DNA of 64,000 bases. Origin: Anthoceros angustus. Its lineage: Eukaryota; Plantae; Anthocerotophyta. Below the pieces are notes generated by a model. That model was not told the origin of the DNA. It worked only from the letters and a program-made list of their open reading frames with translations, and did not search any database. The stretch covers positions 124,001 to 188,000 of the forward strand of contig MU008183.1 in the NCBI GenBank assembly GCA_010909165.1. Direction: 5' to 3'. The position numbers were made by a program, and so were the translations under genes. Positions 6,441 through 63,572 of the stretch are shown piece after piece (within the stretch, counting starts at the first letter, position 1; every line of letters begins with the position of its first letter).

Positions 6441-6613
6441 TGAATCCTCGATACTATAATCGATCCATGAAAGAAGAACTTGTCGGACAATCAATGACAA
6501 GAGAGGTTGCTAGGAAAAGGTTGTCGGGGAGAGGTTGCTAGGTAGCCACGCATGGCAAAGGTGCCTCCGTTTTAGTACAAATTCTTAACACCAATGAGGG
6601 ACTCGCATGTCGA

Positions 6614-6792
6614 GCAACCTCACACGAATGGCAAAGATACACCTGGGTTTTATTCCGAATACTCAACCAATGCACGAAGAACCAATGAGAGAAGAACTCA
6701 CGGGCAACCTCACACGAACGGCAAAGATACACCTGGGTTTTATTCCGAATACTCAACCAATGCACGAAGAACCAATGAGAGAAGAACTCACG
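6614..6792. repeat. 90-bp tandem duplication
   Basis: GCAACCTCACACGAA...GAGAAGAACTCACG occurs twice, nearly identical. Confidence 0.9.
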
Positions 6793-7359
6793 CGGGGCTC
6801 GTGCGGTTTGGGTTTATGTTTTCCAAATCTTCAATAATATAATCAACCAATGCAAGAAGCATTTGTAGGACTACATATGAAAATAACACATATATGGAAA
6901 AGTTCTTTTACATAATTTGAATCTTGAAAAGAAGCCTTCAATCAAAGATCAAAGACAAGTGATGCGAATAATATGCAATGATATGGATTTAATACTTATA
7001 ATTCATGCTATTAAATCTTTTGATACTTTTTTATATTTTAATGGTGTATACATTAATGGTGAGATCATTCCATGATGATGTATAATATTAGCTAATTATT
7101 TTAAAATATTATTTAGTTAATGATTCAATTGAAAAATATGAAATGCATTTCATAGACCCTTTTATCAAAGACCCATTGTAACTCATTATCCACTACACAT
7201 AAGTAATATGCTCTCTGTCGCCACACCTTAAGGCTTAAGATCCATAAGAGCATTTTTAATGGCCCCAAATTTTGAGCCTTGAAGGTGTGTCGAGGGAGAG
7301 CACCTTAGTAATGGTATGGCAATTGATTCAAGCCCATGCTGATCATGGTTGCAGACGTA

Positions 7360-35271: not shown

Positions 35272-38200
35272 TTACGGTCGACCATTACAACTGCAATAAC
35301 CAGCTGCAAATCGATGCACACGATACCCATCTCTTACCACAATGTCACGCTTTTCGACCTTTGACATGATCTGCGTGGAACTGTGGCAGTCGCTGCACAT
35401 CCGTAGATTCTTCGTTACCACCAGAGGTGTGCCACTCGGAGTGTGGAGGAGACCAAACGCCAAAGCTAGCTTCTCAGCATGCCCGCAAAGCGCATCTTCC
35501 TTTTCCTTCTCAGACAGTGGCTTCAACACCAGCTTTGTGTCTGGTACATGGCGCCCTTCCTCCTTCAGACGTGTATTCATGAAGTCTGCCTTCAGCGCAA
35601 TCTCATCATCTCTGTTTTCTCCCACCACAAATGTATGTACCTGCTTCTTCACCTCAATGCCCGCCACTGCAGGTTTCTTGTTAGCTCCCGCGACAATTCT
35701 CTGTGTTTCAATCCTGTCTACGTCTGTCCACCTACCTGCATCTGCATAGGCATTGGCCATGAGCACATATGCAGATGCACCCTGAGGCTCCAGTCTGACC
35801 AGACTTTCATAACAACGCGTGGCCCTCTCTATATCCCCATGGCCTTTGCAGGCATTCAGCAAAGATGTTAACCCAACAACGTTACTTTGGCTCTCACATG
35901 ATAGTAGCATGTTCTCTGCCTCATCTAAGTGGCCTGCACGACCAAGAAGATCGATCATGCAATTGTAGTGCTCAACACTAGGTTTGATGCCATGCAGGTC
36001 CACCATGGAATCAAAGTGCTTGCGACCCTCGTTCACCAATCCCGCATGACTGCATGCTACTAGAAGGCAAGTAAATGTAGCACCATCAGGCTGAATACCG
36101 GCGACTAACATCTCCTCAAAACAAGCTAGTGCGTTGTGACCTTCATCGCAAGTACCATACCCAGCTATGAGGGCAGTCCATGTCACCACATCCTTTGAGG
36201 ACAAGCTGTCAAAAACCCTCCGCGCATCTTCCAGTTCGCCACATTTTACATACATGTCCACCAGGCAGTTGCCAACCATTACATTATCTAACTGTCCTCT
36301 TTCCACGATCTGTGAGTGCAGCTGCCTGCCCTTCTGTAAGGCACCAGCACTTGCACACGCTTTCAGAAGGCAAGCAAAAGTAACATGGTCAGCCACAATC
36401 AGGCCCTCCTGCTCCATTTGTCCATACAGAAGCGCCTCTTGGCCAAGTCCTTGCTGTGCATACCCAGCAATCAGGGCATTCCATGTCACCACATCCTTTG
36501 TGGCCAAGCTGTCAAAAACCTGGCGTGCATCTTCCAGTTCGCCACATTTTGCATACATGTCCACCAGGCAGTTGCCCACCAGTATGTCATCCAGTCCTCT
36601 TCCACAATCTGTGAGTGCAGCTGCCTGCCCTTCTGTAAGGCACCAGTGCTTGCACAGGCCTTCAGAAGGCAAAAGTAACATGTCAGCCACAATCAGGCCC
36701 TCCTCCTCCATTTGTCCATACAGAACAAGCGCCTCTTGAGCTGTGCATACCCAGCAATCAGGGCATTCCATGTCACCACATCCTTTGTGGCCAAGCTGTC
36801 AAAAACCTGGCGTGCATCTTCCAGTTCACCACATTTTGCATACATGTCCACCAGGCAGTTGCCCACCAGTGTTATCTAGCTGTCCTCTTTCCACAATCTG
36901 TGAGTGCAGCTGCCTGCCCTTCTGTAAGGCACCAGCACTTGCACAGGCCTTGAGGAGGCAAGCAAAAGCAACCTCGTCGGCAAAAACCAGGCCCGCCTGC
37001 TCCATTTGTCCATAAGCAACAAGTGCCTCTTGGCCGAGCCCATGATTTGCATACCCGGCTATCAGAGCTGTCCATGTCACCACATCCTTTGTGGCCAAAC
37101 TGTCAAAAACCCTACGCGCCTCTTGCATTTCGCCACATTTTGCATACATGTCCACCAGGCAGTTGGCCACCATTAAATTATCTAGCTGTCCTCTTCCACA
37201 ATCTGTGAGTGCAGCTGCCTGCCCTTCTGTAAGGCACCAGCACTTGCACACGCTTTCAGAAGGCAAGCAAAAGTAAGATCGTTACACACAATCAGGCCCT
37301 CCTGCTCCATTTGCCCATGCAGAAGAAGCGCCTCTTGGCCAAGTCCATAATTTGCACACCCAGCTATCAGGGAAGTCCATGTCACTACATCCTTCATAGC
37401 CATGCTGTCAAAAACCCTCCGTGCATCGTCCAATTCGCCACATTTTGCATACATGTCAACTAGGCAGTTGCCCACCAGTATGTCATCCACGTGACCCCTG
37501 TCTACAATCTGTGAATGCAGCTGCCTGCCCTTCTGCAAGTCACCAGTGCTTGCGCAGGCTTTCAGAAGGCAAGCAAAAGTAACCTCGTCAGCCACAGACA
37601 GGTCATCCTCCTCCATTTTTCCGTAAAGAACAAGAGCTTCTTGACCAAGCCCATGATTAGCATACCCAGCAAGAAGAGCCGTCCATGTCACCACATCTTT
37701 TGTGGTCATGCTGTCAAAAACCCTGCGTGCATCTTCAAGTTTCCCACATTTTACATACATATCCACCAGGCAGTTGCCCACCATTGTGTTATCTAGCTGT
37801 CCTCTTTCCACAATCTGTGAATGCAGCTGCCTGCCCTTCTGTAAGGCACCAGCGCTTGCACAGGCCTTCAGAAGGCAAGCAAGAGTAACATGGTTACCCA
37901 TAATCAGGCCCTCCTGCTCCATTTGCCCATGAAGAAGAAGCGCCTCTTGGCCAAGTCCATGATTTGCATACCCAGATATGAGGGACGTCCACGTCACCAC
38001 ATCCTTTCTGGCTAAGCTGTCAAAAACCCTGCGTGCATCTTCCAATTCGCCACATTTTGCATACATGTCTACCAGGCAATTGCCCACCAGTATGTTATCG
38101 AGCTGGTTTCTGTCCACAATCTCTGAATGAAGCTGCCTGCCCTTCTGCAGGGCACCTTCGCTTGCACAGGCCTTCAGAAGGCAAGCAAAAGTAATGTGGT

Positions 38201-39686
38201 CAGCCACAATCAGGCCCTCCTGCTCCATTTGTCCATGCAGGAGAAGCGCCTCTTGGCCAAGCCCGTGATTAGCATACCCTCCTATAAGAGCCGTCCATGT
38301 CACCACATTTTTTGTGGCCAAGCTATCAAAAACCCTGCGAGCATCTTCCAGTTCACCACACTTTGCATACATGTCTACCAGACAAGTGCCCACAAGTATG
38401 CTATCTAGTTGACCTCTTTCCACAATCTGCGAGTGCAGCTGTTTCCCCTTCTGTATTGCACCAGCGCTTGCACAGGCCTTCAGAAGGCAAGCAAAAGTAA
38501 CATGGTTACCAACAATCAGGCCCTGCTGCTCCATTTGTCCATGCAGAAGAAGTGCCTCTTGGCCCAGCCCATGATTTGCGTATCCACCTATCAGGGCTGT
38601 CCATGTCACCACATCCTTTGTGGCCAAACTATCAAAAACCCTGCGTGCCTCTTGCATTTCGCCACATTTTGCGTACATGTCCACCAGGCAGTTGCCAACA
38701 TATAAGTCAGGAGGAATGCCAGTGTCCAACACGTCAAAGTGCACTTTTCTGCCAGATTCCAAGTCCGCAGCAAATGCACAAGCTTGAAGGGCTGCTACAA
38801 AAACGTGAGCATCTGCCTTCGCACCTGAGCTACGCATCTCATGGTACAGTTGAATGGCCTGGTGAGGTTTCCCCTGTTTAGCATGTGCAGATATTATGGA
38901 AAACCACATGAAGACATCTGGTTTTCCCACCCTGGTGAACACATCCATAGCCTCCTGTAGCCTACCTCCAAATGCATACATCCGCAAGATATGGTTCCCC
39001 AAGTATGTATTCGACTCGTAGCCAAGTTTGACAGTGAGATGATGAACTCGTCGCCCCACGACCAGATTCTTCCTAGCTGCACACAGTTTTAAGACACTAT
39101 ACAACAGAGACTGAGGAACAGGACTGTCTGTCTGCGCCAGAAATTCCAGGGCTCCAACTGCCTCTGTAAGCTTCCCCTGCTGGCATAACGTGCTGACGGT
39201 CACAGCCGTTACGACCCCCATTTCCCATCCTGCACGCCTAGCAGGCTCCGGCTTATCAGGAGAGCTCGACTTGAACGGAGACGCACAATGACCCATCTGC
39301 ATATCTAGCGAAACGAGCTGCCCATCCACCCAAGCTGGCTTGAACATGCTGCTTAACCAGAGGACCTCGCCGGACCCCTTACGCCAGAAGTCAGGTGAAC
39401 GGGAGCTCTTCTTATCTCGCCTGTTATCCCACCACATGGCAGGGTCCAGAAAAAATTGTCGCCACAAGAGCTCCTGCTCCTGGCGACCACCATCGCTGGA
39501 AAATCCTTTCCCAGGTATCCATTTGCTCGGAAGTGCTGGGTTCCTTACACTGGTGCACTTGGAAGCCTGCTTGTTTGCTAATTGGTGGCTCCCCAAGGTG
39601 AGGTGGGCGGGAGCTCCTTGTTGAATCCGAGTACACCCGCCAATTTCTTGAATCCAGGGTGGATCCGGTTGCCATACTTTGGCCAT
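35272..39686 (-). CDS. PLS-class PPR protein with N-terminal OSB-like PDF motif, ~33 PPR motifs, E1/E2 and DYW:KP (GRP) domain; several apparent frameshifts
   Basis: ORFs 37182-39740, 36826-37266 and 35272-36771 join into one array of 102-aa P-L-S triplets. C-terminus [10 protein letters not shown]...[14 protein letters not shown]...[10 protein letters not shown]...CSCNGRP. Confidence 0.9.
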
Positions 39687-39989
39687 CTCACACGAACCAC
39701 TCTCGGACGAAGAGACGCACAACGAACCATGAATGCACACTCTCGGAAGCTCGGGCCTTATTAGGTACTTACGACTGTGTGGGGAAGTGTGTGAAACCGT
39801 GAGAAGCGGTTTGATTTTGAGTTTCCTAAACAGGAAGGGAAAGGATCGGAGGGCCTAGGATTCCCAGAGAGCACAGTCCCATTTCAGTGGAAGGAGTTCC
39901 GCTATGTACCGGCCTCACCATTTTGTAACAGAGGCACTCAACACTACGGGGCCATGCTCTCGTGCTCATTGCGCAATTTCTTTAGAGCT

Positions 39990-40968
39990 TCAATGGAAGC
40001 TCCTTTGTGGCTCCGGTGTGCTGTGCTCACATCTGGAGCTTCCGCAGGCCTTCAGAGGGCATCCAAAAGTAATATTGTCACCCACAATCAGACCCTCCTC
40101 CATTTTTCCATACAGAACAAGAGCCTCTTGGCCAAAGGCCATGATTGTATACCCAGCTATCAGAGCTGTCCATGTCTCCACATCCTTTGTCGCCAAGCTG
40201 TCAAAGACATTGAGCGCATCATCCAGTGCGCCACATTTTGCATACATGTCCACCAGGCAGTTGCCAATAGAAAAGTTAGGAGGAAGGCCAGTGTGAGCTA
40301 CATCATAGTGCACTACTCTGCCAGATCCCAAGTCCGCAGCAAATGCACAAGCTTGAAGGGCTGCAACATACACATGAGCATCCGCCTTGACACCTGAGCT
40401 ACGCATCTCATGGTACAACTAAATGGCATCGTTAGCTCTCCCACGGTTAGCATGTGTGGAAATGATGGGCAACCACATGAATGCATCCGGTTTTCCCACC
40501 CTGGTCAACACATCCATGGCCTCGGGTAGCCTACCTCCTAGCCAGGTCGACCTGGAAAGCGAGGCACCATGACCCATCTGCATGTCTAACGAAACGAGCT
40601 GCTCATCCTCCCTAGCTGGCTTGAACATGCTGTTTAACCAGAGGACCTCGCCGGATCCCTTACGCCAGAATTCAGGGGAATGGGAGGTCTCCTTAACCCG
40701 CCTGTTATCACAACCCGTGGCATCCAGAAAAATTTGTCGCCACAAGAGCTCCTGCTCCTGGCGACCACTATCGCCGGAAAATCCTTCCCCAGGTATCCAT
40801 TTGCTCGGAAGTGCTGGGTTCCTCGTAACACTACTGCACTTGGAGGCCTGGTTGTTTGCCAGTTGTTGGGTCCTTACGGCGAGGTGGGCGGGAGCTCTTC
40901 GTTGAATCCGTGTTCACCCACCAATTTCTCTGAGTCCACGGTGAATCTGGTTGCCATACTTTGGCCAT
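39990..40968 (-). pseudogene. truncated 5' duplicate of the neighbouring PDF-PPR gene
   Basis: MAKVWQPD start and upstream flank shared with the 39686 copy. The PDF motif is degenerate, there is an internal deletion and a frameshift, and it ends after about 5 PPR motifs without E/DYW. Confidence 0.85.
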
Positions 40969-41204
40969 CTTATACGACCCACTCTCGGACGAAGAGATGC
41001 ACAACGGACGATGCAGACAAGGCGAGATACTGTGCTTCACCACTTCACTCTTAGTAAGCACATTTTCAGACAGAAAAAAATGAAACAGCCGTGGACGTAG
41101 CGGAAGAGCAAGATAATAACAGGTGGAGAAGCTCTGGGTCCAACGCATCTGTTGCAGGTGCACGATATGAATGCTGCAACAAAGAATCTACGCAGTGATT
41201 ATCA

Positions 41205-42228: not shown

Positions 42229-44638
42229 TCATCTCAAGCTGCCATTTCTGTGTGAGTGATGAGCTTTCTGCAATAGTAGCTTGCACAGGGCAGCACTCAT
42301 CTCCCCGAGAGAGATGGGTTTCAAAACTACTCCATCCATACCTATCTCCAAGCACCGTTTCTGTGTGCCCTTGTCAGTGTTTGCAGTCAATGCTATCACC
42401 AGTGGGCGCTCTTCTGGCCTGAATCTCTGATGAATCTGCATTGCTACTTCATACCCATCCATCTCTGGCATGCAAAGGTCAAGTAAGAGCACTTCAAAAG
42501 TCCTACCAGGTTGAGCTAAAGTGGCTAGACACTGGTGCCCAGATTCTACAACCGTTGTGTTACAGCCTAATCGGTCCAGCAGTCTGCGGGTGACAATCCT
42601 GTTTACACTGTTGTCATCGGTGACCAAAACTTTCAGACCTTTCAGGTCTGCTTTGTTAAGAGCCTCGTCCCGGATTTTCCGCTCTTTTTCAATAGAGGAG
42701 TTCTGGAGCTGAAGCCTAACAATGAATGTGACTGTGGACCCTTTACCCAAGCCCTCACTTTCAATCCAGATGTGCCCATGCATGAGCTGCACCAGGAAAC
42801 ACAGGAAAAAGTTGGTAGCCGTTCAAGAACAGACAACATCCGCAACCACATTACTAACCAACCAAACCATTTTCAACACCAACAGCAGTAAAAAACGTTA
42901 CCTGAACGAATTTCTTACAAATCGCTAGACCTAGTCCTGTCCCCCCATAGTCCCTAGTCGTTGTACTATCAGCCTGCACAAATTTCTGGAACAGCCTTGG
43001 AATATCACTGTCTTTCACCCCCAGACCAGTGTCCCTCACTTCAATTCGGATGTAGACAAACCCCTCACAAGGAGAAGGTCTCCAAGCTGGATTGGCAGGG
43101 TCTCGCTTGTTTTCCAGCCGTTCAACTGTCACATGCACATGCACACGGCCATGCTTCGTAAATTTCACAGCATTCCCAATCACGTTCAGTGAGGTCTGCA
43201 GAAGCCTCTTGTCATCGCCAATAACATAGGTGGGGACATCATCCGCAACTTCAAATACAAAATCTAGACCTTTCCCTTTAGCCATTGGCTTAGCCAGATT
43301 TCCTGCCTCACGCAAGACCATAGGTAACTCAAAGGGGCCAAGCTCAAGGGTAAGGCTCCCATCCTCCAAGCGGGAGAAATCCAGCACATCATTGATCAGG
43401 GTAGAAAGAAGGCTACTACTTTTGACAACTGTCTCAACCATGGACTTCTGTTCAGGATTCAAGGTAGACTCTTGAAGGAGTGAGGAGAGAGCAATGATCG
43501 CATGCATGGGAGTCCGCATCTCATGATTCATGACGGCAAGGAAATCATTTCGGGCCCTGATTGCAGTGTCAGCGTCCTGCCTTGCCTGCTGAAGTGCCTT
43601 GTTCTGCTCAATCAGTTGGTCCCTGGTTCTCTGGGACTCTTCGAGAACGGCAGCATGAGAGAGGGCAACTGCTACCTGATCCGCCACTCCTTCAGCCATC
43701 TCCAGTTCATGATACCTCCAATTCCGACCACTCTCACCAGGCAGCACCAACACCATAACAGCATACGAGGCGTCCACCATTGACATATGCAGCAAAGGGA
43801 GTCTGACTGCCGCTGTTGCACCTACAAACTGCCTGTGGTTACTTTCTCTACCTAAAGGACAGGTTGGAGGAATAACAAGTGCCCCGTAAGAGGAGATCAC
43901 ATCCAAAACAAAGGGATCATCCGCTGGCACAGTCACTGGCACTTGCAACAACCGCCGCTCCAGCTCGTGGGTGAGCTCCAACACATTCAGGTTGGGATTG
44001 GGCATCCAAATGGTGCAATTCTCCAGACACAACGTCTTGGCTAGCTCTACAAGTGTCGTGTTAAGGATGGTGTGGCGATCCAAGGAACTGCGGATCTCAT
44101 GAGTCAGCATTCTCACATGTCGACCTGCCTCCTCCTGAGCTTTGATCATATCCATCTCCCTATCTAACTCTGCAGCCTTATGCTTCAAAAAGTGCTCCCT
44201 CACTTTCACCTGCAATAACTCTGGAATAATGTGAATGAGAGTGATTGCAGTAGCACAGGAAACGAGAGCCGTCAGCACCTTCAGTATTGTCTGCAGAAGC
44301 ATGATGAAGAAGGAATGGGGACCATACGTCCAGATGGATATAAAGTGGGTCAATCCGCAGAGCACGATAAAAGCTCCAAACTGGATCAGGATCCATCTGA
44401 ACGGGAACACCTTGGAGCAGCTCACGAAGTAGAGCAGCTCCAGGGGTATGGAGAAGTAGGCAAGTGCAATCAAAAAATCACTTCCCAACTGGAGGCGAGC
44501 GAGCGTCTCCAAGCCCCACAGATCATCCTCACATGAGCATCTGGACAGACCTGCGCCGGAAGTGTCCTGGGCACTACCTGCCACCACCACTGCCAAAATC
44601 CCAACAAGCGCCATGGACGCCTCCCAGAACAGCCCCAT
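42229..44638 (-). CDS. ethylene receptor (ETR-type hybrid histidine kinase); exons 44638-42902 and 42786-42229
   Basis: SDFLIALAYFSIPLEL and [12 protein letters not shown] (Cu-site Cys/His), GAF domain, NHEMRTP, GNAVKFT, DTGLG, GGTGLGLAICK, receiver LLDLCMP. Confidence 0.95.
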
Positions 44639-46452
44639 GGTACACACTTGCACAGCAGGAACAGGCGCTTCCTCAGCCAAGCGCAACTGGGGAACTGCCA
44701 CAAAGCACCAAATGTCACAAAATGTCAGCACCCACCAAATCTTCCAGAAAGCCTCAACTCCACCACGTCACACGACCACAAACCAGTCAAACCTCTTCAA
44801 CACCCCCCCACGACCTGCCGTCGTCTCCGCATCCCCGATCAACCAAGCAACGCCTTTCAACCACACCATCCCATTCCCACATCCGACAGACGAAAGCCTC
44901 CTCACCTGAATCTAGATCGTCAACTAGAGGATCACGGCGAAACCTTGGGTCCGCAAAAGCCATACCCTCAACCACGCAATATACACCCAAAAACCAGCTC
45001 AGAATCAAATCCCAACCTCCTAAAATTCCAGTCGTCCTGCAGCTGACATCCGGCCCGACAGCGGCATCACCACTCCAAGCTCACGATCTCTCTCTCACCA
45101 GCCGGCTGCTGCAGCAAACTGGATGCAAAAACTAGTCTTGGGCACGGCATGACCTTTGCTTTCTCAGATCAAAACTCCCTCCTTGTCCCCAAATCCTGCA
45201 ACCCATAAACCCTAGGCTGAGCAAGCAATCCGCCCACCACCTCCACAATCCTGCTCCGGCCCCCTCCCAGTCATACAGCCCCTCCCGCCGCCTCCTCACC
45301 CAATTCCGCCCCCACCACTTCCACGCAGAGCTGGGAAAGCGCCGGCAGGCCTCGGCCGTGTCCGTGCGCGGGGGGCGGGTCTAGGATTCCGCCTCCCGCA
45401 CGGACATGTTGGGCTCCTGCGTTGCTCAGCCGGGAAACCGCCCACCAGGTGGAAAGAGGAGGAAGATGGAGCACTCACGCTCACATCCAGCAAACAGGAG
45501 CCAATCGCCCACCACAGTGACCAGCCAGGACTCACACCCGGACCCAGTCATCAGAGGCCCGCGAACATTGCCGGCCTCGGCTTGCGACTCGCAGCCCAAA
45601 ACGACCCGCCTGCTACATTATTGAAAGCATTAAACCCAGAAGTCCAGGCAGCCACGTGACATCCGGAGCCGCTGCTGTGGACCCATCCGTCTCGGCCATG
45701 TGGCTACCTGGTGTATTCCGGGAATGTTTTCTTCTCTGGCACCGCCGGTATCTAAGGCCCCGGAGCCGAGAGGTGGAAACGCGGCGGCTCTTGATTGCAG
45801 CAGCAGTTCGCGTTTTCTTCACCCTTCCCCCTCCCCCGCCTGCTACGAACCCGGCGGGAACCTCAGGGTAGGCTTCAAAGAGGATGAAAGGGCGTTGGTT
45901 GGCTCAGCTCATCCAACACAGGCCGGCAAGTGACACGGCGGTGGATCTCCGGGAGATCGCCTGCAGGCACGCTACTCCCTCGCAGCCCGCCGCGTGTCCC
46001 CACAAACCACCCACCTGTTGAGACAATACACGCCTGGGTCTCCAGTGCGTTCAACCAACTAGGAGAATGTCTATCCTGAGCTGCAGCAGTTATTTCGTCG
46101 GGACGTACATCTGGGCCCGCTGCAGATCTTCCGAGATTGAGCTCCATGTGAGAGCCTGTTGCGTCCTGGAGTCCGGGACCCTGGATCAACAGCAACTGCC
46201 CCTTCAGCAATGACTTCATCAAGTAGACAGGCAATTCATCCAGTGATTCCACCACAGTGAGCGGACGGACTAGGTCTTCTAGGATCTGGATGCTCACAGT
46301 GATCAGAGTCCAGTCCGGTCTGGTGATGAGCTGATTCTCCCTAAGCTTACACTTCGTCTTCCTCTTCTGCTTCTTACATCTAAACGAATGACAAGAGTAA
46401 GCTGGAGCGAGGGATTATGTACACGAGAGTTGGATCAAGCTCCGGAATCAAG

Positions 46453-49969: not shown

Positions 49970-50101
49970 ACTTTGTGCAGTGATTGCCACAGTTCCACGG
50001 AGGTCATGTCAAGGGTTGAAAGGAGAGAGATTGTTGTAAGGGATGGGTGTCATGTGCATCGATTTGCAGCTGGTTGTTGCAGTTGTAAGGGTCGATCCTG
50101 A
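49970..50101 (+). pseudogene. orphan DYW:KP C-terminal fragment
   Basis: [42 protein letters not shown], with no upstream HAE motif or PPR array. Confidence 0.85.
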
Positions 50102-51091
50102 GAATCAACACTTAGCCAGTGCTCAGCAGGTGAAACGTTGTATCTGAGAGTCCGGGAAGTATCTGCAGTTGCTAATTCATGATAGGCTTATTGTATGGGT
50201 ATTGCTTGGGCTGGACAACATTGGGTCTGTTTGAAGATGGTTTAGCAAGACGATAGGAAGATGGCAGGTAATGGACATGGTTGGTGTTCAGTGGTCAGGA
50301 ACCTCGATGATTGGAGGTTGGAGGGAGGACAATTCATGCTATCAGGGCATCGATGGGCTGCAGGTGCAGAGGGGGTCTGGGTGATATGAGGTTTGGAGGG
50401 AGCACATTTCAGGCTACCAGGACATCAATAGGCTGCAGGTACAGGGGGACATCAAACAAAGTCAAGCAGTGCTCCGACAGCAAATGTATGTAGGTGAGTA
50501 GGTACTCTAACTCCAAGTCTATAGCTTCGAATTCTATCAACCTGGGTTCATTTTTTATGTCATTCCACCTATAGAGCCCCAGTAATTAACATCACAAGAC
50601 AAAATTTATCAACCTATTGCTCTGTGCTTATTCGCAACGTCGTTTTATTTACAAAGTACCAGTTATCAAGAATGCCAGGAAAGATTTCTATCAACCTGTG
50701 TGGAGAATCGGTGCCAAATGCTTGGCACCATGCGTACACCTTTAGTTCCTGTAAGCACTTGGTGTGGAAGAGTCTTAAGCAAGAGATGCTCACCGACTCT
50801 TGGCACAACGGGTTATCACCTTGAATTGTTCGTGTGTTATAGCACAGAAGGGTTGGATTATGCCTGCGGACAACTAACAGCAGGGTTTCAGAGAATAGTT
50901 GTAACGAAAGAGCACCGAACCGCAAACCAAAGGGTCTGACCGAGAGTTTCAAAAGCATCTGATAAAGCAACACAGATAAAAAGTAATAAGTTCCTGTTAA
51001 GTTATAAGGACAAAGGCTCAATGTGAAGGCCCAAGTTCAAAACAAGAATAAGTTCCTCCAGCTTGTCCTTTAGGTGGAGAAAGTGACCACG

Positions 51092-51986
51092 GGCAGTTTG
51101 TAGGTGCAACAGCAGCAGTCAGACTCCCTTTGCTGCATATGTCAATGGTGGACGCCTCGTATGCTGTTATGGTGTTGGTGCTGCCTGGTGAGAGTGGTCG
51201 GAATTGGAGGTATCATGAACTGGAGATGGCTGAAGGAGTGGCGGACCAGGTAGCAGTTGCCCTCTCTCATGCCGCCGTTCTCGAAGAGTCCCAGAGAACC
51301 AGGGACCAACTGATTGAGCAGAACAAGGCACTTCAGCAGGCAAGGCAGGACGCTGACACTGCAATCAGGGCTCGAAATGATTTCCTTGCCGTCATGAATC
51401 ATGAGATGCGGACTCCCATGCATGCGATCATTGCTCTCTCCTCACTCCTTCAAGAGTCTACCTGGAATCCTGAACAGAAGTCCATGGTGGAGACAGTTGT
51501 CAAAAGTAGTAGCCCTCTTTCTACCCTGATCAATGATGTGCTGGATTTCTCCCGCTTGGAGGATGGGAGCCTTACCCTTGAGCTTGGCCCCTTTGGCATC
51601 CAAATGGTGCAATTCTCCAGACACAACGTCTCGGCTAGCTCTACAAGTGTCGTGTTAAGGATGGAGTGGCGATCCAAGGAACTGCGGATCTCATAAGTCA
51701 GCATTCTCACATGTCGACCTGCCTCCTCCTGTGCTTTGATCATATCCATCTCCCTATGTAAGGATCAGGCGAAATGTGTGGGGGAGATGAACGGAGATGG
51801 ATCCTGATCCAGTTTGGAGCCTTCATTGTGCTCTGTGGATTGACCCACTTTATATCCATCTGGACGTCTGGTCCCCATTCGTTCTTCATCATGCTGCTGC
51901 AGACACTACTGAAGGTGCTGACGGCTCTCGTTTCCTGTGCTACTGCAATCACTCTCATCCACATTATTCCAGAGTTATTGCAGGTG
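51092..51986. pseudogene. scrambled fragments of the ethylene receptor gene in alternating orientation
   Basis: 51092-51593 is the reverse complement of ~43331-43832; 51594-51757 is a direct copy of ~44001-44163; 51796-51986 is the reverse complement of ~44206-44397. Confidence 0.92.
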
Positions 51987-52275
51987 ATACATTGCTGTCA
52001 ACGAGATAAGCAACTCGGTCAACATATCCAGAGGTGAGGAGCAAGCCTTTAGGTTCCGGAGTTCGTTCATTTGCTTGAGACACCATTCCTATGGGAGGAG
52101 ACATTCAATTCCGTTTTTCTGTCCCGAAAAAGGGTGAGGATCCGCTATCTGTCATAGCCACCCAGTTTGCTGTCTTAGTTTGAACAGGCATGGCCTTCAG
52201 CAAGGATAATCACCCCCTCATAAGAAGCAATATTCCGTGGTGCACACACGTGAGGTCTGGCAAGTTCTCCCCTTC

Positions 52276-55200
52276 TCATGGTCGACCCTTACAACTGCAG
52301 CAACCATCTGTGAATCGATGCAAGCGGTACCCATCCCTTACAACAATGTCTCTCTGTTCAAGCCTTGACATTATCTCAGTGGAACTGTGGCAGTCACTGC
52401 ACATGCGTAAATTCTTAGTTACCACCAGAGGTGTCCCACTTGGAGTGTTCAACAGACCAAAAGCCAGAGCTAGTTTCTCCGCATGCCCACAAAGCGCATC
52501 TTCCTTTTCCTTCTCACACACTGGCTTCAACACCAACCTTGTGTCAGGTAAATGACCTCCCTCCTGCTTCACGCGTGCATTCATGCTCTCTACCTTAAAT
52601 GCAATATCATCTCTGGTTTCTCCCACCAGGAATCTATGTACATGCCTATTCACCTCAATGGTCGCCACTGCAGGTTTCTTGTTGGCTCCTGCTGCCCTTC
52701 TCTGTGTTTCAATCCTGTCTACATCGGTCCACCTACCTGCATCTGCATAGGCATTGGCCATGAGCACATAGGCAGCCGCCTCCTGGGGGTCCAGCCTAAC
52801 AATGCTTTCAAAACAGATCATCGCTCTCTCTATATCACCGTGACTTTTGCAGGCATTCAACAAAGACGTCAATCCCACAACATTAATTTGGCCCTCGCAT
52901 AATGATAGCATCTTCTCGGCCTCATCCAAATAGCCAGCACGCCCAAGAAGATCAATCATGCAGTTGTAATGCTCAATGGTTGGTTTGATGCCATGCTGTT
53001 CAGCCATCGAGTCAAAGTGCTTGCGACCCTCGTGGACCAGTCCCTCATGACTGCATGCTACTAAAAGGCAAGTAAAAGTAGCATCAATAGGCTGAATACC
53101 GGCAGCTAACATCTCCTCAAAACAAACTAGTGCCTTGTGGCCTTCATCACAAGTACCATACCCAGATATCAGGGCATTCCATGTCACCACATCTTTGTGT
53201 TCATGCTGTCAAAAACCTGGCGTGCATCTTCCAGTTCACCACATTTTGCATACATCTCCACCAGGCAGGTGCCCACCAGTATGTGATCCAGCAGTCCTCT
53301 TTCCACAATCTGTGAGTGCAGTTGCCTGCCCTTTTGTAAGGCACCAGTGTTTCCACAGGCCTTGAGAAGGCAAGCAAAAGTAACATGATCAGCCAAAATC
53401 AGGCCCTCTTGCTCCATTTGTGCATACACAACAAGGGCCTCTTGGCTGAGTCCTTGCTGTGCATACCCAGCAATCAGGGCCGTCCATGTCACCACATCCT
53501 TTGTGGCCAAGCTATCAAAAACCTGGCGTGCATCTTCCAGTTCACCACACTTTGCATACATGTCCACCAGGCTGGTACCCACCAGAACGTCATCCAGCAG
53601 TCCTCTTTCAACAATCTGTGAGTGCAGCTGCCTGCCCTTCTGCAAGGCCCCAGTGCTTGCACAGGCCTTCAGTAGGCAAGCAAAAGTAACATGGTTAGCC
53701 AAAATGAGGCCTGCCTCCTCCATTTGTCCATACACAACAAGCGCCTTTTGGCCAAGTCCTTGCTGTACATACCCAGCAATCAGTGCATTCCATGTCACCA
53801 CATCCTTTGTGCCATGCTGTTCAGCCATGGAATCAAAGTGCTTGCGACCCTCGTGGACCAGTCCCTCATGACTGCATGCTACTAGAAGGCAAGTAAAAGT
53901 AGCATCATTAGGCTGAATACCGGCTAACATCTCCTCAAAACAAGCTAGTGCCTTGTGACCTTCATCACAAGTACCATACCCAGATATCAGGGCATTCCAT
54001 GTCACCACATCTTTGTGTTCATGCTGTCAAAAACCTGACGGGCATCTTCCAGCTGACCACATTTTGCATACATGTCCACCAGGCAGGTGCCCAACACTAC
54101 ATTATCCAGCAGTCCTCTTTCGACAATCTGTGAGTGAAGCTGCCTGCCTTTCTGTAAGGCACCAGTGCTTCCACAAGTCTTCAGAAGGCAAGAAAAAGTG
54201 ACATTGTCAGCCAAAATGAGGCCTGACTCCTCCATTTGGCCATACACAACAAGCGCCTCTTGCCCGAGTCCTTGCTGTGCATACCCAGCAATCAGGGCAG
54301 TCCATGTCACGACATCCTTTGTCTTCATGCTGTCAAAAACATGGCGTGCATCTTCCAGTTCACCACATTTTGCATACATGTCCACCAGGCAGGTGCCCAC
54401 CAGACGTCATCCAGCAGTCCTCTTTCAACAATCTGTGAGTGCAGCTGCCTGCCCTTCTGTAAGGCACCAGTGCTTGCACAGGCCTTCAGAAGGCAAGCAA
54501 AAGTAACATGGTTAGCCAAAATGAGGCCTCCTGCTCCATTTGTCCATACACACAAGCGCCTCTTGGCGAGCCCTTGCTGCATACCCAGCAATCAGGGCAT
54601 TCCATGTCACCACATCCTTTGTGGCCATGCTGTCAAAAACCTGGCGTGCATCTTTCAGTTCACCACATTTTGCATACCCAGATATCAGCATTCCATGTCA
54701 CCACATCCTTTGTGGCCATGCTGTCAAAAACCTGGCGTGCATCTTCCAGTTCACATTTTGCATACATGTCCACCAGGCAGTTGCCAACAAACAAGTTAGT
54801 AGGAATGCCACTGTGCAACACATCACAGTGCACTTTTCTGCCAGATTCCAAGTCAGCGGCAAGAGCACAAGCTTGAAGGGCAGCTACAAAGACGTGACCA
54901 TTCGCCTTCACTCCTGACCTACGCATCTCATGGTACAGTTGTATGGCCTCATTCGGTTTCCCATGCTTCGCGTATGCAGAAATTAAGGAAAACCACATGA
55001 AGGCATCTGGTTCGTCCACCCTGGTGAACACATCCATGGCCTCCTGTAGTCTACCTCCACATGCATACATGCGCAAGATATGGTTCCCCAAGTAAGCATT
55101 CGAGTCGCATCCAAGTTTGACAGTGAGATCATGAACTCGTCGCCCCACAACCAAATCCCTCCTAGCTGTACACAGTTTCAGCACAATGTAGAAGAGAGAC

Positions 55201-55784
55201 TGAGAGATGGCAGAGTCTGTCTGCGCCAGAAACTCCAAGGCTCCAACGGCCTCAGAAAGCTTCCCCTGATGACATAACATGCTCACGGTTTCAGCCGTGA
55301 CCACGCCCGTTCCCATTCCCGATCCTGCACGCCTGCCAGGTTCAGGCTCATCCGAAGATATCGACTGGGAAGGAGAGGCACCATGACCCATCTGCATATC
55401 CAAGGAAACGAGCTGCTCATCAACCCAAGCTGGCTTGAACCTGTTGTTTAACCACAGGACCTCGCCGGACCCCTTACGCCGGAAGTCAGGCGAACGGGAG
55501 CTCTTCTTATCTCGTCTGTTGTCCCACCACATGGTAGGCTCCAGAAAAAATTGTTGCCACAAGTGCTCCTGCTCCTGACAAAGACCATCGCTGGAAACCA
55601 CGTCCCCACCCACACATTTTCTCGGAAGTGGAAGTGCCGGGCTCCTTACACTGCTGCATCTGGCAGCTTGGTTTGCCAGGGGTTCACTCCCTGAGGTGAG
55701 GTGAGCCAAGGGTCCTCGTAGAATCCGTGTACACACACCAATTTGTTGGGTCCACAACGGGTCTGGTTGCACTACTGTGGCCAT
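52276..55784 (-). CDS. second PDF-PPR-E-DYW:KP (GRP) gene, with frameshifts and an internal duplication
   Basis: MATVVQPD start; [38 protein letters not shown]; PLS array; [29 protein letters not shown]. Confidence 0.85.
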
Positions 55785-58765: not shown

Positions 58766-61700
58766 TCACGGCCGACCCTTACAGCTGCAACAACCAGCTG
58801 CGAACCGATGCACACGGTACCCATCCCTTACAACAATGTCTCTCTGTTCAAGCCTTGACATGATCTCCGTGGAACTGTGGCAGTCACTGCACATGCGTAG
58901 ATTCTTTGTCACCACCAGAGGTGTTCCACTCGGAGTATTCATAAGACCAAACGCCAGAGCTAGTTTCTCCGCATGCCCACAAAGAGCATCTTCCTTTTCC
59001 TTCTCGCACACTGGCTTCAACACCAACTTGTGTGAGGTATGTGGCCTCCTTCCTGCTTCAGACGTGCATTCGTGCTCTCTACCTTGCGCAATATCCTCTC
59101 TCCTTCTCCCACCACAAATGTATGTACCTGCTTCTCCACCTCAATGGTCGCTACTGCAGGTTTCTTGTTAGCTCCTGCTGCCCTTCTCTGTGTCTCAATT
59201 CTGTCTACATCGGTCCACCTACCTGCATCTGCATAGGCATTGGCCATGAGCACATAGGCAGGTGCCTCCTGAGGGTCCAGCCTAACAATGCTTTCAAAAC
59301 ACCACATCGCCCTCTCTATATCCCCGTGACTTTTGCAGGCATTCAACAAAGACGTCAAGCCCACAACATTACTTTGGCCCTCACATGATAATAGCATCTT
59401 CTCAGCATGCCCACAAAGAGCATCTTCCTTTTCCTTCTCACAGTGGCTTCAACACCAACTTTGTGTGAGGTATGTGGCCTCCTTCCTGCTTCAGACGTGC
59501 ATTCGTGCTCTCCACCTTGCGCGCAATATCCTCTCTCCTTCTCCACCACAAATGTATGTACCTGCTTTCACCTCAATGGTCGCCACTGCAGGTTTCTTGT
59601 TAGCTCCTGCTGCCCTTCTCTGTGTCTCAATCCTGTCTACATCGACCCACCTACCTGCATCTGCGTAGGCATTGGCCATGAGCACATAGGCAGGTGCCTC
59701 CTGGGGGTCCAGCCTAACAATGCTTTCAAAACACCACATCGCCCTCTCTATATCCCCGTGACTTTTGCAGGCATTCAACAAAGACGTCAAGCCCACAACA
59801 TTACTTTGGCCCTCGCATGATAATAGCATCTTCTCTGCCTCATCTAAATGGCCAGCACGCCCAAGAAGATCAATCATGCAGGTGTAATGCTCAATAGTAG
59901 GTTTGATGCCATGCTGTTCAGCCATGGAATCAAAGTGCTTGCGACCCTCCTGGACCAGTCCCTCATGACTGCAGGCTACCAAAACGCAAGTGAAAGTAGC
60001 ACCATCAGGCTGAATCCCAGCAACTAACATCTCCTCAAAACAAGCTAGTGCCTTCTGACCATCATCACAAGTACCATACCCAGATATCAGGGCGGTCCAT
60101 GTCACACATCCTTTGTGTGAGGTATGTGGCCTCCTTCCTGCTTCAGACGTGCATTCGTGCTCTCTACCTTGCGCAATATCCTCTCTCCTTTCTCCACCAG
60201 AAATGTATGTACCTGCTTATTCACCTCAATGGTCGCCACTGCAGGTTTCTTGTTAGCTCCTGCTGCCCTTCTCTGTGTTTCAATCCTGTCTACATCCCAC
60301 CTACCTGCATCTGCGTAGGCATTGGCCATGAGCACATGCAGGTGCCTCCTGGGGTCCAGCCTAACAATGCTTTCAAAACACCACATCGCCCTCTATATCC
60401 CCGTGACTTTTGCAGGCATTCAACAAAGACGTCAAGCCCACAACATTACTTTGGCCCTCACATGATAATAGCATCTTCTCAGCATGCCCACAAAGAGCAT
60501 CTTCCTTTTCCTTCTCACAGTGGCTTCAACACCAACTTTGTGTGAGGTACGTGGCCTCCTTCCTGCTTCAGACGTGCATTCGTGCTCTCCACCTTGCGCG
60601 CAATATCCTCTCTCCTTCTCCCACCACAAATGTACCTGCTTCTCACCTCAATGCTCGCCACTGCAGGTTTCTTGTTCGCTCCTGCTGCCCTTCTCTGCGT
60701 TTCAATCCTGTGTACATCGGTCCACCTACCTGCATCTGCGTAGGCATTGGCCATGAGCACATAGGCGGGTGCCTCCTGGGGTTCCAGCCTAACAATGCTT
60801 TCAAAACACCACATGGCCCTCTCTATGTCCCCGTGACTTTTGCAGGCGTTCAACAATGACCTCAAGCCCACAACATTACTTTGACCCTCACATGATAATA
60901 GCATCTTCTCTGCCTCATCTAAATGGCCAGCACGCCCAAGAAGATCAATCATGCAGGTGTAATGCTCAATAGTAGGTTTGATGCCATGCTGTTCAGCCAT
61001 GGAATCAAAGTGCTTGCGACCCTCGTGGACCAGTCCCTCATGACTGCATGCTACTAAAAGGCAAGTAAAGTAGCATCATCAGGCTGAATACCGGCAACTA
61101 ACATCTCCTCAAAACAAGCTAGTGCCTTGTGACCATCATCACAAGTACCATACCCAGATATCAGGGCGGTCCATGTCACACATCCTTTGTGTGAGGTATG
61201 GCCTCCTTCCTGCTTCAGACGTGCATTCGTGCTCTCTACCTTGCGCAATATCCTCTCTCCTTTCTCCACCAGAAATGTATGTACCTGCTTATTCACCTCA
61301 ATGGTCGCCACTGCAGGTTTCTTGTTAGCTCCTGCTGCCCTTCTCTGTGTTTCAATCCTGTCTACATCCCACCTACCTGCATCTGCGTAGGCATTGGCCA
61401 TGAGCACATGCAGGTGCCTCCTGGGGTCCAGCCTAACAATGCTTTCAAAACACCACATCGCCCTCTATATCCCCGTGACTTTTGCAGGCATTCAACAAAG
61501 ACGTCAAGCCCACAACATTACTTTGGCCCTCACATGATAATAGCATCTTCTCTGCCTCATCTAAATGGCCAGCACGCCCAAGAAGATCAATCATGCAGGT
61601 GTAATGCTCAATAGTAGGTTTGATGCCATGCTGTTCAGCCATGGAATCAAAGTGCTTGCGACCCTCCTGGACCAGTCCCTCATGACTGCAGGCTACCAAA

Positions 61701-63572
61701 ACGCAAGTGAAAGTAGCACCATCAGGCTGAATCCCAGCAACTAACATCTCCTCAAAACAAGCTAGTGCCTTCTGACCATCATCACAAGCACCATACCCAT
61801 ATATCATGGCCGTCCAAGTCACCACATCCTTTGCGGCCATGCTGTCAAAGACCTGGCGTGCATCTTCCAGTTCACCACATTTTGCATACATGTCCACCAG
61901 GCAGGAGCCCAACACTGCGTTATCCAGCAGTCCTCTTTCGACAATCTGTGAGTGCAGCTGCCTGCCCTTCTGTAAGGCACCAGTGCTTGCACAGGCCTTC
62001 AGAAGGCAAGCAAAAGTAACATGGTTAGCCAAAATGAGGCCCGCCTCCTCCATTTGTCCATATACAACAAGCGCCTCTTGACCGAGTCCTTGCTGTGCAT
62101 ACCCAGCAATCAGGGCGGTCCATGTCACCACATCCTTCGTGGGCAAGCTGTCAAAAACCTGGCGTGCATCTTCCAGTTCACCACATTTTGCATACATGTC
62201 CACCAGGCAGTTGCCCACCAGTACGTCATCCAGCAGTCCTCTTTCCACAATCTGTGACTGCAGCTCCCTGCCTTTCTGTATTGCACCAGTGTTTCCACAG
62301 GCCTTCAGAAGGCAAGCAAAAGTAAAATGGTTAGCCAAAATGAGGCCTTCCTGCTCCATTTGTCCATACACAAGCGCCTCTTGGCGAGCCCTTGCTGTGC
62401 ATACCCAGCAATCAGGGCATTCCATGTCACCACATCCTTTGTGGCCATGCTGTCAAAAACCTGGCGTGCATCTTCAGTTCACCACATTTTGCATACCCAG
62501 ATATCAGGCATTCCATGTCACCACATCCTTTCTCCCATGTTGTCAAAACCTGGCGAGCATCTTCCAGTTCGCCACATTTTGCATACATGTCCACCAGGCA
62601 GTTGCCAACAAACAAGTTAGGAGGAATGCCACTGTGCAAAACATCAGAGTGCACTTTCCTGCCAGATTCCAAGTCCGCGGCCAATGCACAAGCTTTAAGG
62701 GCAGCCACAAAGACGTGGCCGTTCGCCTTCACTCCTGACCTGCGCATCTCATGGTACAGTTGTATGGCCTCATTCGGTTTCCCATGCTTAGCATATGCAG
62801 ATATTACGGAAAACCACATGAAGGCATCTGGTTTCCCCACCCTGGTGAACACATCCATGGCCTCCTCTAGCCTACCTCCACGTGCATACATGCGCAAGAT
62901 ATGGTTCCCCAAGTATGCATTCGAATCGTACCCAAGTTTGACAGTGAGATCATGAACTCGTCGCCCCACAGCCAAATCCCTCTTAGCTGTACACAGTTTC
63001 AGCACAGTGTAAAACAGAGACCAAGAGATGGCAGAGTCTATTTGCGCCAGAGATTCCAGAGCTCCAACGGCCTCAGAGAGCTTCCCCTGCTGACATAACG
63101 TGCTCACAGTTCCAGCCGTTACCACGCCCTTTCCCGATCCTGCACGCCAGCCCTGTTCAGGCTTGTCCGAAGAGCTGGACCCGGAAGGAGAGGTACCATG
63201 ACCCATCTGCATATCCAAGGAAACGAGCTGCTCATCAACCCAAGCTGGCTTGAACATGTTGTTTAACCACAAGACCTCGCCGGACCGCTTACGCCGGAAG
63301 TCAGGCGAACGGGAGCTCTTCTTATCTCGTCTGTTGTCCCACCACACAGTAGGGTCCAGAAAAAATTGTTGCCACAAGTGCTCCTGCTCCTGGGCACGAC
63401 CATCGATGGAAAACCCGTCCCCACCCACACATTTTGTGCAGCTGGAGGCTTTGTTCGCCAGCGGTTCACTCCTGAGAATGAGGCGAGAGGGAGCTCCTGG
63501 TAGAATCCCTGTACACACACCAATTTGTTGGGTGGTGAACGTGTCCGGTTGCCTTTGCCATATTGTGGCCAT
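58766..63572 (-). CDS. third PDF-PPR-E-DYW:KP (GRP) gene with reiterated P2-L2-S2/E/partial DYW segments; reading frame broken as assembled
   Basis: [10 protein letters not shown] start; [38 protein letters not shown]; PLS array; five copies of the E1-E2-KPAVA segment between 59017 and 61600; final GHAEKLA...CSCKGRP. Confidence 0.8.

Follow-up and report, generated by a model that had tools for sequence, protein, structure and literature searches.

An OSB-type PDF domain is, on sequence comparison, an old, in-frame and selected N-terminal part of many PLS-class PPR editors of seedless plants. Three intact copies and one decayed copy occur in the window, that is, the whole stretch of 64,000 nucleotides analysed here (50% GC; Anthoceros angustus contig MU008183.1, positions 124,001 to 188,000), which carries four related PPR genes, all on the minus strand, with ethylene-receptor genes interleaved. 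In seedless plants, up to thousands of organellar sites are edited in the absence of MORF cofactors. The question is how single PPR-DYW proteins find their targets efficiently, and a conserved, folded N-terminal PDF is a concrete candidate for a nucleic-acid module that serves target finding. Both parts, the PDF and the PLS-PPR-DYW:KP protein, are known; as far as our partial coverage of the literature goes, their pairing and the phage and bacterial relatives of the PDF are new. The first-pass annotation of this window knew of no functional description of the fusion, and none was found in the searchable literature either, several primary papers being outside its reach. The pairing of PDF or OSB with PPR is not mentioned in a 2026 survey of OSB proteins, which requires an OB fold (PMC13393729), in a 2026 survey of editing factors (PMC13386178) or in a review of moss PPR proteins (PMC9459714).

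Identity of the domain

Sequence, a profile built from OSB proteins only and the predicted fold agree in making the motif an OSB-type PDF, as first proposed, and we regard this identity as virtually certain. The Arabidopsis OSB proteins are OSB1-4, OSB2 being PTAC9, and the family was reportedly defined in Zaegel et al. 2006. The PDF is a motif of about 50-60 residues with a Pro-Asp-Phe signature and conserved W..DxR..K, LW and PxW (OSB proteins are reviewed in PMC6963530 and PMC13393729). The isolated PDF of OSB1 suffices for ssDNA binding (PMC6963530), and OSB1 and OSB2 prefer ssDNA over dsDNA or RNA (PMC4166229).

The motif was originally placed at 39315-39470 with no strand given. The peptide is indeed encoded there, on the minus strand and inside an ORF at 37182-39740 (minus), and the bounds are widened by the HMM to 39306-39482. 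The features of the four genes, called copies A to D, are as follows.

39483-39686, minus strand: start ATG (39686) and 68-residue leader of copy A, a candidate organelle transit peptide; ATG aligned in 4/4 copies
39306-39482, minus strand: OSB-type PDF domain of copy A; OSB-only HMM 60 bits, 48% identity to the PDF of an OSB1-named cluster, AlphaFold pLDDT 92.8, TM 0.89 to an SSB-family plant cluster
39190-39305, minus strand: Ser/Pro-rich linker of copy A, ~39 residues, joining the PDF to the first PPR-like helix
35842-39189, minus strand: PLS-type PPR array of copy A, mainly near-identical 306-nt P-L-S triplets; Pfam PPR, unit spacing and indel map
35653-35841, minus strand: E motif of copy A; Pfam PF20431
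35272-35679, minus strand: DYW:KP domain of copy A, GRP subtype; Pfam PF14432 and residues read directly
40587-40760, minus strand: decayed PDF of copy B; OSB-only HMM 23 bits
~39990-40970, minus strand: pseudogene remnant of copy B; large deletions, in-frame TAG, DYW missing
55401-55577, minus strand: intact PDF domain of copy C; OSB-only HMM 68 bits
52276-55784, minus strand: gene of copy C, from ATG 55784 to the DYW:KP-GRP end at 52276; frame broken within the array
52276-52680, minus strand: DYW:KP (GRP) domain of copy C; Pfam and residues read directly
63216-63392, minus strand: intact PDF domain of copy D; OSB-only HMM 68 bits
from 63572, minus strand: gene of copy D, starting at ATG 63572; frame-broken
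58766-59165, minus strand: last DYW:KP (GRP) domain of copy D; residues read directly

A phmmer search with the motif against 1.84 billion representatives gave 617 matches. Among the best 150 of them, 74 have an OB fold and are OSB-like, 13 have PPR repeats and none has both. One of the OB-fold clusters includes a member named OSB1, whose PDF is 48% identical to that of copy A over 60 residues. The scan with an OSB profile that the first-pass annotation had proposed was performed with an HMM built from 182 PDF segments of OB-fold proteins alone; copies A, C, D and B score 60, 68, 68 and 23 bits, respectively, far above the maximum of -1.1 bits among 126 reversed or shuffled window translations, and therefore the motif is not a product of chance. 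The AlphaFold model of the copy A domain (pLDDT 92.8) consists of a helix, a small beta core and a second helix. A structural match to the OSB PDF was likewise obtained between predicted models: the Atlas shape search returned a plant SSB-family cluster with TM 0.89 and rmsd 1.1 A, together with three plant PPR clusters of 57-127 members with TM 0.82-0.89.

None of the sequence families in Pfam, PHROG and PDB covers the PDF domain, and the plant PDF matches no solved fold (best Z 3.9), which is partly why the fusion has gone unannotated. Word-indexed homologue searches with the PDF region, an insensitive method, returned nothing useful, and tblastn of phage GenBank records and motif-seeded viral scans were blank. 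Two candidate homologues were discarded, namely CP29, with short and non-significant matches, and mycobacteriophage gp49 (PF25690), a lead from Atlas features with an hhalign probability of 0.1%.

Compared with OSB proteins, the window genes have the same PDF of about 59 residues, with all invariant residues and the same predicted fold. However, they have no OB fold, and no SSB Pfam match was found in the window ORFs; their PDF is single and N-terminal and is followed by PPR-E-DYW, whereas OSB proteins carry one to several PDFs at the C-terminus.

The fusion partner and its reading frames

The earlier description of a fusion to the N-terminus of DYW:KP editors holds in that the PDF is in frame with PLS-PPR-E-DYW:KP genes, but it has to be qualified, since all copies are frame-broken as assembled and copy B has no DYW. 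A P-L-S triplet array followed by E motifs is present according to Pfam, unit spacing and direct reading. The KP box, HAE...CxxC, the conserved active-site Lys and the terminal GRP were read directly in A, in C and in the last of the D copies, the Lys of copy A preceding NLRM; based on the numbering in PMC9478123 and PMC11845758, we infer that this Lys is equivalent to Lys88. The GRP subtype of DYW:KP has been described for hornworts, and designer proteins are the only ones for which its U-to-C activity has been demonstrated (PMC9478123). The window genes share the PLS array, E motif, KP box, HAE, active-site Lys, CxxC and GRP with the hornwort DYW:KP-GRP factors (designer KP2/KP3, PMC9478123; Lys88, PMC11845758), but the published accounts covered and the designer proteins are without PDF, and the window genes are frame-broken as assembled. 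The addition of a nucleic-acid module to a PPR scaffold has parallels in PPR proteins with RRM, SMR, LAGLIDADG, NYN or SAP (PMC9459714) and in MORF, ORRM and OZ fusions (PMC13386178), although in those systems, unlike the PLS editors of the window, the modules sit on P-type proteins or editing cofactors.

As assembled, none of the four genes is open from the PDF (or leader) to the DYW. Relative to intact paralogous stretches, the frames are broken by ~36 deletions of 1-4 nt, which are not independent because some recur between duplicated segments, and by one insertion. The frame-shifts are confined to the repetitive array or to the stuttered end of copy D; for example, the array of copy A is open as far as 37182, and frame-shifting deletions of 1-4 nt lie at ~37194, 36870 and 36740-36600. 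There are no substitution stops in the stretches read, and the same window contains an uninterrupted ethylene-receptor ORF of 625 codons. An unpolished long-read consensus gives one-sided deletions in repeats of just this kind. The frame breaks of A, C and D are thus probably assembly error, judging from their pattern, and the three may be live genes. Copy B, in contrast, with its large deletions, in-frame TAG and damaged motif, is a real pseudogene. Intact relatives exist elsewhere (P0149, P0164 and P0170). In addition, the E/DYW:KP end of copy D is present as about five repeats across 58770-61860, two of which have identical small deletions in common, reflecting either a recent tandem duplication or a misassembly.

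Conservation and selection among the copies

The aligned ATG of copies A, C and D (at 39686, 55784 and 63572, respectively) opens a leader of 60-69 residues in frame with the motif, the linker and the PPR array, and the PDF begins at residue 61-70. An in-frame stop precedes this ATG in C and D, and the leader indels among the three copies are multiples of three. With 13-18% Ser+Thr and 3-4 acidic residues, the leader is, by composition only, not strongly typical of a transit peptide.

The contrast noticed at first sight between a conserved motif and a variable upstream N-terminus is borne out by the nucleotide identity between copies, which is 89-97% in the motif and 69-78% in the leader; at the amino-acid level, the PDFs of C and D are each 84% identical to that of A. 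A pattern of 13 near-invariant PDF residues is present in A, C and D and absent in B. The copy near 40595-40750, correctly recognised as decayed, has lost both Trp before DNR and one codon, and its PDF reads PEF. For the pairs A-C and A-D, the dN/dS of the PDF is 0.23-0.24, similar to that of the first PPR repeats (few sites), and for C-D it is 0.48, resting on six changes; leader dN/dS values involving copy D were excluded, since a stop codon shifted the codon mapping. With dN/dS of ~0.24 over few sites, the PDF domain is under purifying selection. Its net charge is near zero.

Distribution of the fusion and its relation to U-to-C editing

The combination of PDF and PPR was identified in proteins of Adiantum, Ceratopteris, Pteridium, Selaginella, Diphasiastrum and Sphagnum, and some of these proteins bear two or three PDFs. 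The Pteridium ORFs are transcript-derived, and therefore the fusion is present in mRNA. The C-terminal ends vary: the Sphagnum protein (P0125) has a PG-type DYW, those of several ferns have an E motif and no DYW, P0149 and P0164 end in KP-GRP, and P0170 in KP-DRH. Among nine KP proteins sampled by their DYW domain, not by PDF, the PDF is intact in two, altered in one (the query itself), a relic in one and absent from both protein and upstream DNA in four, while the remaining model starts within the array.

A preference of the PDF for KP over PG-type DYW, which the first-pass annotation had suggested looking for, is contradicted by these data, since the PDF also occurs on a Sphagnum PG-type DYW protein and on many E-class proteins without DYW, and is missing in four of the nine KP proteins. 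The idea that the PDF determines U-to-C editing is consequently rejected; moreover, designer GRP-type KP proteins edit U-to-C without PDF (PMC9478123). The fusion is old, optional and unconnected to U-to-C chemistry. In the tree, the PDFs of the window group with other PPR-borne PDFs and apart from those of OSBs, with weak support, the motif being too short to resolve the donor; this fits inheritance of an old fusion, without proving a single origin. A paper on moss PPR78 reportedly names a conserved N-terminal domain 'CURT', and this domain of moss editors might be the PDF.

In L105:4001-6506, a PDF 64% like that of the window is followed by a stop and then by a PPR gene in another frame with a degenerate KP-like DYW (HVE, ending in RRN), which suggests a short intron between the PDF and the PPR gene. 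P0044, a model of 1526 residues, combines an OB fold and three PDFs with a kinesin motor domain and may be a fused gene model.

Relatives outside green plants

The PDF has been called green-plant-specific in a review (PMC4166229), which is contradicted by the relatives that we find, by sequence, in phages, bacteria and dinoflagellates. The Atlas shape search yielded two viral clusters (TM 0.70 and 0.66, ~60 residues) and a Gemmatimonadota Rad52 cluster (TM 0.42 over the core). One phmmer match, P0090 (L042:6011-6568), comes from a phage-like contig; it is a complete PDF protein of the zinc-free kind, encoded between a PD-(D/E)XK exonuclease and a DnaB helicase. The two Atlas viral clusters are of similar size and have the fold in common. 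A DNA pattern for the PDF core matched 34 viral and 62 bacterial-bin contigs; among the latter, L045 looks like an algal OSB contaminant.

The prokaryotic modules share the core W-D-N-R-x8-P-D-F-K with the plant PDF, the spacer being always eight residues, and have four Cys around it. In these proteins (phage ERF, Rad52/Sak and Gemmatimonadota) the place of the two helices that flank the plant PDF core is taken by the four Cys, a predicted zinc ribbon. Positions outside the selected pattern also match the plant domain, namely K+6 (98%), N+8 (93%), P+9 (98%), K/R+10 and a downstream Trp (95%). The profile-profile probability between plant and prokaryotic families is 98%, a value inflated by the pattern selection, and the prokaryotic HMM recovers the three intact window copies at 22-25 bits against a control maximum of -0.4. 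When folded, the zinc version is nearest to the topoisomerase I C-terminal zinc ribbon (Z 3.6), followed by GRF domains (Z 2.2-2.4); the TopA and GRF zinc ribbons bind ssDNA, and their likeness to the PDF core is more distant, a weak link to be taken as a lead only.

In 25 of the 34 viral matches, many of which are closely related, the module forms the tail of an ERF annealing protein, and in one that of Rad52. These carriers (L008-L041; for example L008:12674-13444 and L041:2666-3670, both minus) have a C-terminal zinc-version PDF core, in most cases with an acidic xPF tail behind it. In several others the N-terminal domain is unclassified (L015 and L040, phrog_22961; L021; L036). Among complete bacterial ORFs, 48 of 51 have two tandem modules and then an acidic tail with LPF or IPF at its end, which we take to resemble the partner-binding tail of bacterial SSB. 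The Gemmatimonadota proteins (L043-L104; for example L064:4876-5355, minus, and L094:1951-2442, plus) are of ~170 residues, with two zinc-ribbon-like PDF modules, an acidic SSB-like tail and no OB fold, and are candidates for a new kind of bacterial ssDNA-binding protein. In dinoflagellates (Cladocopium, Effrenium and Biecheleria), proteins with 4-9 tandem PDF domains occur, some behind a hydrophobic leader (P0006, P0009 and P0021; probably P0002, P0010 and P0013); they are candidate plastid minicircle-binding proteins.

By sequence likeness, the phage, bacterial and dinoflagellate relatives suggest where the PDF came from and that its core is zinc-ribbon-like. One course of events, which we consider doubtful as a whole, is that a single-strand-binding module descended from a phage or bacterial zinc ribbon passed into green-algal OSBs and was grafted on PLS-PPR editors early in land plants, tethering them to ssDNA at organelle transcription sites.

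Possible functions of the domain

The PDF is probably a single-strand anchor of some kind, ssDNA being somewhat likelier than RNA. The reading that we place first, though tentatively, is a tether to ssDNA in the nucleoid, because every identified non-PPR carrier is a DNA-handling protein: the OB-fold OSBs, phage ERF and Rad52, the tandem-module bacterial proteins and the phage-like gene between exonuclease and DnaB helicase. The prokaryotic relatives lend the tether comparative support. On this mechanism, the leader would be cleaved on import, and the PDF would remain, folded, ahead of the PPR array as a sequence-non-specific single-strand anchor that raises target encounter, holding the editor on the ssDNA exposed in transcription bubbles and R-loops of the nucleoid, so that nascent RNA could be edited before folding. 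The choice of RNA site would stay with the PPR array and the chemistry with the DYW domain, and the PDF would act as an optional booster without deciding between U-to-C and C-to-U. Editing by PPR56 is blocked where the RNA is structured (PMC10482289), and therefore early access would help. However, binding by a single PDF may be weak beside that of the tetrameric OSB2, designer KP2/KP3 (PMC9478123) and N-terminally truncated PPR56 (PMC10482289) edit without PDF, and the PDF is missing, altered or decayed in six of the nine sampled KP proteins. Standard constructs retain just 14 residues ahead of the first PPR (PMC10482289, PMC13656186) and would remove the PDF wherever present; designer U-to-C editors reach 22-50% efficiency (PMC9478123). 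If the tether is real, there would be a physical link between editing and the nucleoid in seedless plants, made by a domain that is routinely removed for heterologous assays.

Ranked second, as a possible but less favoured reading, is an additional clamp on RNA, by which the PDF would grip single-stranded RNA 5' of the PPR-bound tract, load or slide the editor and keep the target unfolded, in the role played by MORF/ORRM cofactors in seed plants. PPR arrays read RNA N-to-C along 5'-to-3', and by this geometry an N-terminal domain faces the upstream RNA. Editing by PPR56 increases with upstream sequence and decreases with base-pairing (PMC10482289); MORFs are restricted to seed plants (PMC13386178), and the identified PDF-PPR fusions are all from seedless plants. 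The grouping of the window PDFs with PPR-borne PDFs, weakly supported in the tree, points the same way. A clamp on RNA is harder to reconcile with the preference of OSBs for ssDNA over RNA (PMC4166229) and with the DNA-handling nature of all identified non-PPR carriers.

It is unlikely that the PDF is a largely dispensable passenger, carried along when an ancestral PPR gene gained an OSB-derived 5' piece with promoter and targeting leader, then often lost and perhaps cleaved, the window copies possibly all being dead. Frequent loss or decay among KP proteins, editing without PDF (PMC9478123), the frame breaks in 4/4 window copies, and several gene models of ferns and lycophytes in which the PDF starts 1-30 residues from the annotated Met would all agree with such a history. 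However, the invariant residues are kept in Sphagnum, ferns, lycophytes and hornwort-type genes alike, the domain is even amplified to two or three copies, its fold is carried by the three Atlas clusters of 57-127 PPR proteins, and its dN/dS is ~0.24. Moreover, the PDF of OSBs is C-terminal, far from the transit peptide, and hence capture of a leader does not explain a PDF on PPR genes.

Quite unlikely, too, is a role in protein contacts instead of nucleic-acid binding, whether by oligomerisation, docking on OSB or nucleoid proteins, or capping and stabilising the first PPR repeats. The tetrameric state of OSB2 (PMC6963530), the conserved Trp-rich core with its flanking helices and the net charge near zero are in keeping with it, but the isolated PDF of OSB1 binds ssDNA by itself (PMC6963530). 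In addition, the variable 39-residue Ser/Pro linker separates the PDF from the PPR array. The unedited base is retained in the organelle genomes of editing-rich plants, and hence editing is needed. With that base retained, and with DYW:KP proteins acting on RNA (PMC9478123), base conversion at the DNA level, in which the PDF would let PPR-DYW act on single-stranded organellar DNA, is very improbable despite the ssDNA-binding pedigree of the PDF and the reported ability of designer PPR arrays to bind ssDNA.

Other features of the window

An ethylene receptor (ETR1-like) gene lies at 42229-45135 (minus), and a partial inverted copy at ~50000-52000 (plus) is 97% identical to it over 556 nt. A plus-strand DYW-like fragment is present near 49976, and short tandem repeat arrays were observed in a six-frame scan at 1400-1950 and 6600-6800.
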